Translations under genes and position numbers: made by a program
Notes under the pieces: model-generated
The model's input: the letters and a program-made list of their open reading frames with translations, nothing else
Databases searched by the model: none
Told to the model about the DNA's origin: nothing
Source: Macrostomum lignano
Lineage: Eukaryota
Reading direction: 5' to 3'
DNA length: 64,000 bases
Assembly: GCA_002269645.1 (NCBI GenBank)
Contig: NIVC01003746.1
Span: 15,111 to 79,110 of the forward strand
Shown: piece by piece, positions 2,932-8,900 of the stretch
Position numbering within the stretch: the first letter of the stretch is position 1
Layout of the letters: the number at the start of each line of letters is the position of its first letter

Positions 2932-5900
2932 TTAGTTCTGCTTCTCGCCGGCCGCGGCCTGGGCGGCGCCGGACTGCTGGCCGCCGGTGGCCTGGCTCTT
3001 GGCCTGGTGGGCGTGCAGAACGGCCACGGCCTCGTCCACCTGAGATTAGTTAATAGCGGCGGGTTGCAATGATGCAATGAGAATTTTTTAGAGCAAGGCG
3101 AAATTATAATCTCTCTCTAATCACTTCTCTTTTCTCCCTTCTCTTATTTCATTCCTCCTCTTCTTTATTCCCTCACCTCTACTTTGTGATATCTGTTTGC
3201 TCTCTTCTCTATTACCTCTCCTCCCCCTCCTCTAGCCCGCAGTCTGCGCTAGGTTCTCTCTATCTGTCCCTTGAGGTAAAAAGACCTTGGCTTCAACGGG
3301 GGATCGCGGCTCCTAGTACTGTATTTCTAACAGACTTTCGCAGCAAGGGGGTAAAATATGACTTAGTCTAATTTGACGCATGATACCACAAGCGAGGCCT
3401 GTAACTTTGCAAACTAACCGCAGCCGACTATGCTTAACTTAACAGGTGCTGGCTGGCAGCTAGCAGAGACCTAGGATTGACATTGCAATAATAGCAATAC
3501 ATATGGATGCAAGTGTCTGCAGGGACAGGTGCGCCGCGCAGTTTTAATATCAATCATAATTGACTACCGCACGGCGCGTTTAATCTGCAGTCTTTCACAT
3601 CAATATAACAGCCGTTGGTTACAACAAGAGCGCTTGCTGGCATCGAAGGCAATAGCGAACTTGCAGATTTCGACTGTAAAGGATGAGCTTTCAATTATCA
3701 ATGATTGCACAGCTGCTGTACGCGGAGACAGGTGTACCGCAGGGCAAATTTCATTATAGGGATGCAAAATGCGGCACGTTTAATCCGAGAGACAACAATC
3801 TCACAGTTGTTGGTTCAACAAGACCGCTGTTATAAGGGGGAATTCCAGGGAGCAACTACCGGAGCAATGCAAGCACTTTACAATTACATAAACATCTTGG
3901 TTCTCTTACACCTGCAGCTCTGTGTCTGCATGGCAACTCGAAATCATCCCATTTATTATCAGCCTGAGAGCCTACCACAGGTTCATGTTCTATTTTTCAT
4001 CAATTTAAAGCAGGGGTAGGCAAACTCCGGCCCTCAAAGCCTCTCTATCCAAACCATTGGGTCCTTTGAAACTTCACAATGGCAATCTGGCTCGCTCAAG
4101 ATTTGTCTTCTCTCAGCTCTCTTCGATCTCTAATCTCCTCTTCTCTTATTTCACCCTTCCTGTCCTCTTGTCTCCTCTCTTTTATTTCCTCACCTTTACT
4201 TTGTCCTATCTCTCTTCTCTATTACCTCTCCTCTCTCCCCCTCCCCTGACCCGCACTCTGCGCTAGGTTCTCTCTATCTGGCCCTTCAGTTAAAATTGCT
4301 GACACTTGATTAAGGTGTACTTTTATTAAATTTATGACGCAGTTATATCAATTTGTGGGTACATTATCAATATTAATCTATAATTTATGATTGAATTTTT
4401 ATGCTTTGAAATATTTTCCGGAATTTTCTCGAAATTCACAGTATTTTGTTTGAATACAATAATAAACTAATCCCCAATAGTAGTGTCCGTTAATTAGTGC
4501 TAGCTCACCTTCGACTTGAGCGCATCGTGCGACTCCAGCATGTGCAGCAGCTCGGCGTTGTCAATCTCCAACAGCATACCGGTGATCTTGCCAGCCAGCT
4601 GGGAGTGCATCTCGTGAATTAGCGGATAGAGCCTCTCGCCAAGCATCTGCTTCTGCTCCTGCGGCGGGGCGGCGGCCAGCATAGCGGTAGTCAGCGGCTC
4701 CTGAGCGCCGGGCACGCGATCGTGCTGAGACAGCTGGCCCTGAGCCTGCTGCTGCATCTGGGCAGCGACAGCCTGCTGGCCGTAGCCGCCAGGGGCCACA
4801 ACGTTGCGCGCCATCGGGTTAATCTGATAGTTGGGCGTCGGCTTGCGCGGACCGCCGGGGACGCCCATCTGCTGTTGCGGCGGAATGACGCCGCCGGGAC
4901 GGCCAACAGTGTTGGGCATCGGGCGGCCAGCTGGCATCGGGCCCTGCTGGTTGGTGATGGGCCGCGAGGTCGGCCGGATGGTGGCCTGAGGCACTCCGGC
5001 AGGACGCTGAGGACGAGCGCCCAGGCCGGCTGGCTGAGGCTGCATGGCCGGCACCTGGGGACCGGCCGGGCCACCGTACTGGGCCGGACGGATTGGCTGT
5101 CCACTAGGCTGGCCAGCGGTGCCCCAGCGCTGCGGCGGCGGGCGCTGGATGTTCATGTTCATGCCGGCCATGGGATTGAAGAAATTGCGCGGCTGCTGCA
5201 TTGTTGGTACAAAGTAGCCGGGAGCCTGGGCCTGCGGCATGAACTGGCTGGGCAGCTGGCCCTGCATGCGATAGCTGGCTAGGCGCTGCATGTACTGCGA
5301 GGCCAGGTGAGCCTTGCGGTCCTCCTTGCGCTGGGCTAGGGCCACGTACAGAGGCTTGCTGACTACGATTTTGCCGTTCATCTCGGTGACGGCTTTGGTG
5401 GCCTCCTCGGGCGCTACAAAGCAGACGAAACCGAAGCCCTTGCTGCGACCAGTTGAATCAATCATTACCTGGTGGGGGGGTTCAACGTGGATGGATACAA
5501 TGTAGATAACAGCATTGAGATAAGTGGGATGAGACCATATATCAAGAATTGATACCAAATGCATTGTGAGCGGAGACAGGTTCGTCAAATTGCCAATTGG
5601 ATGTTAAACATTTAATGACAATGACGAGTTTTAATCCGCCCCCAAACCGATTGTATAGGACAGCTTAAAAATCTAATTAAGACACGTAAACGCAAGACGA
5701 TTGAGTAGATCGCATCGTTGACATGCCAATAGGCTGTCCAAAATATCAACAAGCTAAACAGGTTTTGTTTTCGTCGCAATTAAAAATACAGCTACTGGCT
5801 GGCTGGCATCTGGTGCTCAATAATCGCATCTTTTTTAAAAATCGTTTTCGCAAACGAACTGGCCTGGGTTGGTCAGCCCGGGCCACATTTCTCTAGACTG

Positions 5901-8900
5901 ATACCGAAAGATACAGAGTACAGACGATAATTCTCATATTAATGTAAGCGGAGACAGGTTCGCCAATCGCCAATTAGAATCAGTGGCACAACTGACGCGT
6001 TTTAATCCACTCTAACAAACCCATTTGTGTCGGGCAGATCTTGTCTGCATAGATAGACATGCAACACTAGCCACTGATAAACGGCTTAGTGCCCATGACA
6101 ATACTGCCCAGTAAGCAATGACCCAATTAAAGACTATCTTACCTTGGCAGACGTGATGTTTCCAAATGAGGCGAACTCGGCCTTCAGCTTCTCGTCGTCA
6201 ACGGTGTCATCCAGATTCTTCACGTACAGATTAACGCCAGTCTGGTAGCGATTCATTCGCTCCTGCTTCTGGCGTTCGAATTTCTCGCGCAGCTCGGCCT
6301 GTCGCTCGCCCTTCTTCTGGGCCCGGCCGACATAGAGAGTCTTGCCGTTGATCTCCTTGCCGTTCAGCGCGGAGACGGCGGCCTCGGCCGACTCTGGCTC
6401 CTTGAAGCAGACGAAACCAAATCCTTTGCCTTTGCCAGTCTCGTCTAACATCACCCTGGACGAGGTGATCTCGCCAAACTCCGAGAACATGGTGTGAAAG
6501 CTCTCTTCAGTCAGCTCGTCGCCAAAGTTCTTAACAAACACGTTGGTAAACTTCTTATCGCTGCTGTTGCTGTGCCGCTCCTTGCGCGGCACGAATGGGC
6601 CAACAAAGACTTTCTTGCCAGCCAGAAGCATACCGTTGACCTTCTCGATAGCCTGGTCGGCGGCCTCTTGAGTCTCGAAGTGCACAAAGCCGTAGCCGCG
6701 CGAGTTGCCAGTCTCGTCATTAGAAATTTTGCAAGACAAAATGTTGCCAAAGGCCGAGAATGTGTCGAACATGGCCTTGTTGTCAATCTGCTTGTCCAAA
6801 TTCTTAATAAAGATGTTGCCTTGTCCCGACTTGCGCAAGGACGGGTCTCGCTGAGACCACATGATGCGAATCGGGCGCCCCTTCATCGGATCGAAGTTCA
6901 TCGTGTCCAAAGCGCGTTCGGCTAAAGTGAATTAATAAAGAGTGGGCAAAATGCAATTTCTGTCCATTAAAGAATGCTCGAATTTGATGCAATAAAGCTT
7001 TGTGTTTTCTCATATGCTTTGTTGGAAATGAGAGTAGTTATAGCATAGCTTATATAACTGAATATAGTTTTATTAGTATATGTTTGACTTTGCATTCTGG
7101 CAAGCTAAATTCACTAGTCAGCTAAACAAGCATTGTAATTTGCTTTTTATTTAAGAAAAACTTGTATTTATTCAATTAAAATTTAACACCCTAGATGGTT
7201 CACTCTGCACTATCTTTGTGTCAGTTTGACTTGCTACACTCGTATATATTGGCATAAGTGCATATTTACTTAAATTACTTCAGTTTTTGTCTTGACATCA
7301 GGTTATTTTAACCTTTTGCTAAACTATGGGCTATGGCTGCACTGCACCACTGGTGCCATTGTGAAACAAGGAATCTGCATGCAGTGGCTTAGAAAAAGAA
7401 GACTCTATCACACTATAGTACTGGTACATGTAGTAAATCTAAAGAATGCAGTTTTCCTTTGTACTGCAGTAAAAAATAATTTTATTGTATTAAAACTATT
7501 TGCCTGTTTTTAATGCTCTTTTTTCTTCCTTGCAACACACAAAAATATTGCTTGAATGTTTGCTGCATGAATGAAAATAATTATCACTAAGTATACCAGT
7601 AGCATTAAAAATTGGAATTAAGATTGTATAGACAGTGTTAATTATTTGTGCTTTAGGCTAAGTAGTCACAGCTAATTAAATAAATGTTTCTTTTGTATAC
7701 TTATATTACTGAACAAAGAGCAGTTTTGTTAAATATAATTGAGTGAACCATCTAGTGATCCATACCAAAGATGCTGTCTAGTACCATGTGCATGACATGC
7801 ATCAAGGAGTTGGCAAAGTTTTTTGGCATGCTCCTTGTAGCAGCGCATGCTAATTTTTTGGCATGTTACCACTGTCAAAGTCATGCATTATGCCACACAG
7901 TATTTTTGGGGTCTTTAAACATGACATAATATTGTTAATTTTTGAAGCAAGTATTTTATGATAACATTAATATACATTAAACATACACACCATTTTTTAT
8001 TAATAACAGGTAAAAAGAAAAAGTTAATTTCCTAGTGATCAACAATCTTCAACCAAGATCAACCAAAACTTATTGCTGCATCTTTATGTTTCAATCATCA
8101 TTTGCTCTAAAAGTTTAATCATTTCTTGATTGTATGTCTTGCTTTGCAATGATATCTTAGACAAATGATTGCCTTTTGTATTTCACCAAGATATTTGCTT
8201 CCAAAGTGTGTTTGCAAAATGTGCCACTGAATTTATCTTTCAACTCACTGCATTCATTCCAATGTTTCTTCATTAAAACAGAAAATTTGTACCTAAACGT
8301 AGAGTAACTATGACACCTTTCAGTGACAAACAGTGTTCCCACTCAGCAACCATTGACGTTAAATTTTGTGTTCTCGTTTTTTAAATTTACTTTCTTTTTC
8401 AAAAGTTGTATTTCTTTTTTATTAGAAGAAGGGGGGTTGTGTGCAACCTGGCACACCTTAAGTGACATAGGCACACAATTGGCAAGATGCATTATTGCCC
8501 ATTCTGCCAACTCCCCTGAGCAAGCATAAAAGCACGCAGATATGTATGCAGGCACACACTCATACAGGTGCACAGAGGCCCAAACTTTATTTTATTGTTA
8601 GGCATGTACACTTCACTGCGCCTTGGGGGTTGGCTCTCAAGGCCATTAATTACACGAGCAGAGCAAGCCAAGATTCCAATTCAGCCCTAAATTAATGTGA
8701 CTGCACTTGGAATTGAGCCTGGGTTGCTGGCACACCCAAGCTTGCACTAGACTGCTGGGCTATGGCCCTCTTTTGTAGTTGTTTTACACTTGCATAGTTT
8801 TGTTTAGGTTTTTTGATTTTTTCATATTTGGAAGCACATTTGGAAATTTGGAAAATAAAATTTCTGAATCCAAAACATTTGGATTTTTACAAAATTGAGA

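Follow-up and report, generated by a model that had tools for sequence, protein, structure and literature searches.

Two introns of the gene for cytoplasmic poly(A)-binding protein (PABP) in the flatworm Macrostomum lignano contain four related segments, here termed copies A, B, C and D, which very probably represent paralogous, intron-encoded box H/ACA small nucleolar RNAs (snoRNAs) that guide modification of the large-subunit (LSU) ribosomal RNA (rRNA) uridine equivalent to U2975 of yeast. They were studied in a stretch of 64,000 nucleotides (nt) of M. lignano contig NIVC01003746.1, hereafter the window, in which position 1 is the first letter. RNAs of this kind constitute a well-known class, and the curiosities of the present set are the four copies for one site, their occurrence as two per intron and the presence of a pair with a reduced 5' domain and a hinge box that is not canonical. 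The host gene is recognizable from minus-strand open reading frames (ORFs) that lie between 2.9 and 15.5 kb and encode the cytoplasmic PABP. The joined translation of its exons 2 and 3 is 99% identical to the M. lignano protein BOX15_Mlig009946g3, which was also used as the tblastn query to place the coding exons onto the window, and the GT...AG limits of introns 2 and 3 are legible directly in the sequence. All four segments lie in the sense orientation of the host gene and, as a preliminary description of this DNA had stated, two of them occupy each of these introns. The features are as follows:

2935..15540, minus strand: PABP host gene, with coding exons at ~15540-15277, 6922-6143, 5468-4509 and 3039-2935
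5469..6142, minus strand: PABP intron 2, GT...AG, host of copies A and B, 200 nt apart
5940..6110, minus strand: copy A, type 1, predicted two-hairpin box H/ACA snoRNA (covariance model 51.4 bits), with 5' hairpin 6110-6032, H box ACACAA 6030-6025, UUAAAAC 6005-5999, ACCUGUC 5959-5953 and ACA 5945-5943
5562..5740, minus strand: copy B, type 1 (covariance model 53.7 bits), with 5' hairpin 5739-5658, H box AUACAA 5656-5651, UUAAAAC 5634-5628, ACCUGUC 5581-5575 and ACA 5567-5565
3040..4508, minus strand: PABP intron 3, GT...AG, host of copies C and D, ~80 nt apart
3714..3828, minus strand: copy C, type 2 (covariance model 50.8 bits), with 9-bp stub hairpin ~3827-3803, AGAUUG 3801-3796, UUAAAC 3783-3778, ACCUGUC 3733-3727 and ACA 3719-3717
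3511..3634, minus strand: copy D, type 2 (covariance model 56.9 bits), with stub hairpin ~3633-3608, AUAUUG 3606-3601, UUAAAC 3583-3578, ACCUGUC 3530-3524 and ACA 3516-3514

Members of the H/ACA class place their target uridine 14-16 nt upstream of the H or ACA box, with the ACA 3 nt from the mature 3' end. The four copies have a common plan, consisting of a lower stem, a pocket formed by UUAAA(A)C and ACCUGUC, an upper stem and an ACA, with pseudouridylation pockets of 6-7 + 7 nt. In all four the ACA starts exactly 14 nt past the A of ACCUGUC, i.e. the first base of the 3' pocket strand, a spacing that had been pointed out previously and holds without exception; in copy D the ACCUGUC is followed by CC instead of UC. 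When the pocket strands are kept unpaired in folding, the same 3' hairpin design is obtained for each copy. The unconstrained minimum free energy fold of copy B (z=-4.2) displays the full hairpin-hinge-hairpin-ACA shape with an open pocket: a lower stem GCGGA/UCCGC, an internal loop of 7+7 nt and an upper stem UCGUCA/UGACGA are followed by UC-ACA, and AUACAA is situated in the hinge. Stable 5' hairpins (z=-3.3 in A and -3.0 in B) give both copies the hairpin-hinge-hairpin-tail organization, and their H boxes, ACACAA in A and AUACAA in B, conform to ANANNA, in line with the earlier assignment, to two of the copies, of a complete 5' hairpin together with a canonical H box. The lower stems of these two 5' hairpins differ by a compensatory change from G-C to A-U. 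Thus, as predicted folds, A and B are canonical two-hairpin H/ACA RNAs.

The relationships among the copies follow their distribution between the introns. Between A and B the identity amounts to 65% over 6110-5943 and 5740-5565, i.e. from the first base of the stem of the 5' hairpin to the ACA. Between C and D it is 62% over 3828-3717 and 3634-3514, likewise ending at the ACA, and the likeness between the two types is confined to the 3' hairpin. The ACA is present past the 3' hairpin in all four, and the homology between paralogs stops at it. Copy A starts 32 nt past the 5' splice site of intron 2, and the 3' end of copy B lies 93 nt ahead of the 3' splice site of the same intron. The positions and the strand originally given for the segments stand for all four, except that the 5' limits of C and D, formerly put at ~3875 and ~3665, are better placed near 3828 and 3634, because that is where the homology between C and D starts, and the upstream sequence lacks a stable fold (z=+1.1). 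The most economical history would be one duplication that placed a copy in each of the two introns, followed by divergence into two types and then by a tandem duplication within each intron.

The pattern GATTAAA-N40-70-ACCTGTC, which captures the two motifs reported as kept in the four segments, occurs four times in the window, at A-D in every case, against an expectation of 0.01 from shuffled sequences. In a raw MAFFT alignment of the copies, the varying length of the apical loops throws the upper stems out of register, and RNAalifold on this alignment recovered the lower stem alone. Covariation was therefore counted after the apical loops had been swapped for GAAA and the sequences re-aligned, the pairs being tallied for the proposed structure; with four sequences the sample is small. 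Standard pairs occupy 91.1% of the cells, as opposed to 28.6-50% after a shift of the 3' partners by 1-3 columns, and 8 of the 14 pairs have undergone compensatory changes on both sides, values attained by none of 500 shuffles. This substantiates the earlier impression of stems that differ and yet pair. For instance, the column pair 6-49 reads A-U, G-U, C-G and U-A across the four copies, and the column pair 24-31 is A-U in A and B and G-C in C and D. Among the single-stranded blocks, the pocket strands and the ACA alone are invariant. This combination of variable paired stems with fixed unpaired guide strands points to selection acting on an H/ACA guide and is the opposite of what a decaying repeat would display.

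A covariance model built from the GAAA-loop alignment was used to search 155 kb of sequence, which included a second M. lignano contig (L001) that is 97% identical and carries the same PABP gene as an allele or a homeolog. The matches were exactly A-D and four counterparts in L001, at 50.8-56.9 bits, with the next best at 10.5 bits. The model recovered no copy in a paralogous M. lignano PABP gene (70% identical, 24 kb locus) and none in the PABP gene of a chiton (41 kb), where matches to the sequence pattern belong to a satellite; the absence from the chiton gene indicates that the association with this host is not broadly conserved. Genomic contigs of other Macrostomum species were sought by means of the exon-3 ORF, which extends into copy B, and only full-length transcript-derived PABPs were returned. 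A loose descriptor match at 49824 on the minus strand was rejected as a chance occurrence, given its coding-like sequence and the presence of ATA in the place of ACA. The surrounding region, ~49700-49960 on that strand, is coding-like and, by eye only, resembles the helix-turn-helix N-terminal part of a transposase.

Comparison of the window with L001 reveals that the constraint closely tracks the limits of the RNAs. Only 6 of 592 positions differ within A-D, as against 76 of 1545 elsewhere in introns 2 and 3 (Fisher p=4e-6). The four differences in copy A all fall in the apical loop of its 3' hairpin, and the two in copy B are both in unpaired parts of its 5' hairpin. The first differences outside the RNAs are encountered at 5938-5939 after A and at 5741 and 5542 around B, and the allelic indels past A start right after ACA+3. 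Copy C lies in a tract of 183 nt (3704-3886) with no difference at all, bounded by differences at 3697-3703 and 3887-3895. Around copy D, the two contigs are 100% identical along ~600 nt of intron 3 and also in exon 4 and the beginning of the 3' untranslated region, with the remaining intron sequence differing by 4-7%; gene conversion, a collapsed assembly or a further constrained element downstream of D might account for the identity over 3040-3634.

The pocket pairs with GACAGGU-[U A]-GUUUUA of eukaryotic LSU rRNA, leaving an unpaired U-A at the base of the upper stem. In this pairing the catalytic position is taken by the second U of GGUUAG, and the bipartite match upholds the target originally named. 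In A and B the 3' pocket strand with the bases next to it, AACCUGUCUC, is a perfect 10-nt antisense to eukaryotic LSU rRNA, and the LSU site is the sole rRNA complementarity common to the copies, with 7-10 nt in every copy (7 nt in D). Duplex predictions give 10-12 pairs on the side of the 3' pocket in A-C, and 6-7 contiguous pairs for the 5' pocket strand in A and B. At least 120 environmental contigs contain the 23-mer CGTGAGACAGGTTAGTTTTACCC, and all three of those checked have complete LSU_rRNA_eukarya genes. In one eukaryotic LSU rRNA the target uridine lies 54 nt past the U of the UGU in the A-loop. With the Um2921, Gm2922 and pseudouridine (Psi) 2923 of yeast as anchor, this amounts to 2921+54=2975 in yeast numbering, and the offsets for Psi2944, Am2946, Cm2948 and Cm2959 in the same rRNA hold U, A, C and C, as required. 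This uridine lies in helix 93, beside the equivalent of A2602 and next to the peptidyl-transferase center, and the corresponding site in Escherichia coli has Psi2604 and Psi2605, which are made by stand-alone enzymes. In yeast 25S rRNA, Psi2975 is guided by snR42 (PMC5699541; bioRxiv 10.64898/2026.03.20.713187), so that the equivalence given in the preliminary description proves correct.

Several points weigh against the proposal that all four copies guide this modification. The window yielded no match to Rfam at gathering thresholds. The target in M. lignano 28S rRNA, expected as GACAGGUUAGUUUUA, is assumed from its conservation in other eukaryotes, and it is from DNA alone that we infer ribonucleoprotein (RNP) assembly, processing, accumulation and modification. 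The comparison of the 5' hairpins of A and B and of the stub of C and D with rRNA found no complementarity common to the copies and no clear pocket or target in A and B. The 5' hairpins of these two may be structural only; a 10-nt match of A to LSU 1414-1423 was rejected, as it is missing in B and has no U in the catalytic position. For copy D the allelic comparison is uninformative because 3040-3634 is identical in both contigs, and its predicted duplex on the 3' pocket side comprises only 7 pairs. The 5' pocket strands of C and D provide only 4 contiguous pairs each. Upstream of these two copies there is no stable hairpin (z=+1.1) and hence no full 5' hairpin, and their hinge boxes, AGAUUG and AUAUUG, end in G instead of A and thereby depart from ANANNA.

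The last of these points bear on the status of C and D, which had been described at the outset as possibly diverging, a caution that proves justified, since neither has a complete 5' hairpin or a canonical H box; the ANAUUG at the hinge and the shorter 5' pocket had been pointed out before. The 5' part common to both consists of the 9-bp stub hairpin followed by NA(G/U)AUUG. Copy C has an AUAACA at 3833-3828 that aligns with the H boxes of A and B; it is located at the extreme 5' edge of the homology between C and D, with base 3828 alone being common to both, and no hairpin precedes it. It might be argued that only A and B are functional and that C and D are decaying snoRNA pseudogenes without a 5' hairpin, an H box or accumulation, as the unstructured upstream sequence, the deviant hinge motif and the shorter 5' pocket strand would suggest, along with a mismatch of D in the extended 3' guide. 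We regard this as unlikely. Both copies retain the two pocket strands, the 14-nt spacing and stems whose pairing is preserved by compensatory changes, both between C and D and in comparison with A and B, and copy C is free of allelic differences over its 183-nt tract in spite of differences flanking it on both sides. Furthermore, C and D are ~82% identical in the stub and hinge, with divergence in the upper stems and loops, a pattern that speaks against free decay, and the snoR137 of plants has the same UUAAAC form of the pocket. The converse proposal, that C and D are functional guides in a reduced, near single-hairpin H/ACA format in which the 9-bp stub substitutes for the 5' hairpin and ANAUUG for the H box, is in our view quite unlikely. 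C and D keep the guide hairpin, but since they have only a stub in the place of the 5' hairpin and their hinge box is non-canonical, activity is less certain for them than for A and B.

Three further explanations would apply to the set as a whole. The window is extremely rich in repeats, and a GA-rich dispersed repeat flanks the C/D region of intron 3, which might imply that a repetitive or transposable element inserted into the PABP introns and that A-D are its pieces or ends. However, that repeat lacks the snoRNA motifs, and no further copy is present in the 64 kb of the window, the 24 kb of the paralogous locus or the 41 kb of the chiton locus. The suggestion that the motifs are the ends of a high-copy transposon was likewise countered by the covariance model, which found only A-D and their counterparts in L001 in the 155 kb. 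Every copy is read in the same direction as the host gene, and their divergence resides in stems with compensatory changes while the guide strands remain invariant, as expected from selection on an RNA and not from the decay of a transposon. A transposon origin was accordingly rejected as extremely improbable. An H/ACA function on a different substrate, either as scaRNAs, the small RNAs specific to Cajal bodies, acting on a small nuclear RNA (snRNA) or at another rRNA site, with an incidental LSU match, appears very improbable. What speaks for it is that the comparison with targets covered rRNA of other eukaryotes. Yet the bipartite match of 7-10 + 4-6 bp presents an unpaired U-N at the correct 14-nt distance on a documented Psi site of yeast, and this site, with 7-10 nt in every copy, is the sole rRNA complementarity that the copies share. 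None of the apical loops of A-D contains the Cajal body (CAB) box UGAG, and on these grounds the scaRNA version was rejected. PABP genes are autoregulated, and the location of the elements in PABP introns could thus be read as a sign of conserved intronic hairpins that serve splicing or autoregulation of PABP instead of trans-acting guides. The lack of copies in the paralogous PABP gene and the confinement of conservation to exactly the unpaired pocket strands and the ACA, which a cis-acting structural element would not need, make this scarcely credible.

The Rfam search called for in the preliminary description was run, and did not place A-D in a family at the gathering level. In E-value mode (A-D region, intron 1 and copy B alone) it recovered no SNORA26 or snR42-like family, and copy B alone found nothing. 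The sole relevant sub-threshold match, a weak one, is that of copy C (window 3714-3822) to the plant snoR137 (RF01433), with 18.4 bits and E=6.6 against a gathering score of 44. Given that no score reaches the gathering level, A-D are treated as functional counterparts of snoR137, SNORA26 and snR42-type RNAs and not as members of these families. The snR42 of Saccharomyces cerevisiae has the same predicted target nucleotide, class and mechanism as A-D and no detectable sequence homology to them beyond the demands of the shared target; it is an independently transcribed single-copy gene, whereas A-D are four intronic copies. In snoR137 of Arabidopsis the consensus of the 3' hairpin contains GGAUUAAAC ... 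ACCUGUCUCC, which are identical to the pocket strands of copy C and occupy the same place relative to the stems. Its UUAAAC pocket indicates that the shorter pocket of C and D is not peculiar to this locus, and the probable target of its 3' pocket is the uridine of plant 25S rRNA that corresponds to yeast Psi2975. The plant gene is intergenic, unlike the intronic A-D, and has been described with only an 18S target, Psi1208, via the 5' pocket (PMC2685112).

In the search with Rfam, SNORA26 gave no match at E<=10. By a constant offset of 1547, U4522 of human 28S rRNA (snoRNABase numbering) is presumably the equivalent of yeast U2975. The human SNORA26/HBI-6 is listed as the guide for this U4522 (PMC5032015). 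The layout of A-D, with two RNAs per intron and multiple isoforms, resembles the snoRNA clusters of rice and Drosophila, and such a case in a flatworm has not previously been described in the literature searched, which produced no paper on Macrostomum snoRNAs. Vertebrates have one snoRNA per intron. In rice and Drosophila melanogaster, introns can harbor more than one snoRNA, and a single host gene can contain several isoforms directed at one target (PMC2780460). The choice of a cytoplasmic PABP as host also has a parallel in SNORA55, an H/ACA snoRNA hosted by an intron of human PABPC4 (PMC5423162). That RNA is present as a single copy, in contrast to A-D. More generally, the coupling of rRNA modification to PABP transcription that had been proposed is simply a generic consequence of the intronic location. 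The guide and target of SNORA55 differ from those of A-D.

These architectural and contextual observations suggest the following course of events. On transcription of the PABP pre-mRNA, the H/ACA folds would be bound, while still nascent, by dyskerin, Nop10 and Nhp2, and Gar1 would join at a later stage. Splicing and debranching would then be followed by exonucleases trimming the intron until the protected RNAs remain, and separation of the two RNAs of each intron would require an endonucleolytic cut in the spacers between A and B and between C and D (200 nt and ~80 nt, respectively). In the nucleolus the pocket of the 3' hairpin would pair with pre-28S rRNA, ACCUGUC(UC) with (GA)GACAGGU and U(U)AAA(A)C with GUUUUA, exposing, 14 nt from the ACA, the unpaired U-A at the base of the upper stem, and dyskerin would isomerize the U.

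The remainder of the PABP locus and the window has several further features. Exons and introns 2 and 3 are 97% identical between the window and L001. Intron 1 (6923-15276) is ~8.4 kb long in the window and ~2.8 kb in L001 (8764-11533), and its version in the window has large insertions, including a 178-bp tandem array of four units at 10829-11537. It also contains, at 14026-14165, a near-perfect palindromic hairpin of ~140 nt with sub-threshold matches to several microRNA (miRNA) models on both strands; since the palindrome is found at a different place in L001 (18750-18926), it looks like a mobile inverted repeat similar to a miniature inverted-repeat transposable element and not like a miRNA. 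The GA/CT-rich dispersed repeat of ~170 nt occurs at 3110-3285 and 4120-4295 as direct copies and at 12-263 as an inverted copy downstream of the PABP gene. The two copies in intron 3 are ~1014 nt apart and bracket the C/D region, and they neither overlap the snoRNAs nor contain their motifs. Minisatellite arrays with periods of 12-273 bp, each extending up to ~2.4 kb, crowd the window and explain the extreme GC-skew blocks in its composition profile. They include, among others:

20016-22377: minisatellite array
25573-27009: minisatellite array
27455-28378: minisatellite array
32807-34029: minisatellite array
35585-36407: minisatellite array
58202-59069: minisatellite array
62113-63038: minisatellite array

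The H/ACA guide mechanism, as it is understood, is left unchanged by A-D. What they would add is a hitherto unannotated snoRNA family in a flatworm model organism, together with the prediction of a specific pseudouridine beside the peptidyl-transferase center, at a position that is also modified in yeast. This would support the view of an ancient and widely retained modification, whose guides turn over fast in both sequence and genomic context. The locus would likewise represent a clear intronic snoRNA cluster outside plants and insects. Should C and D indeed function in the reduced H/ACA format, this would imply that such a format is under selection in a bilaterian beside canonical two-hairpin paralogs for the same site. 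The four copies would thus offer a natural comparison between canonical and 5'-reduced H/ACA paralogs directed at the same nucleotide.

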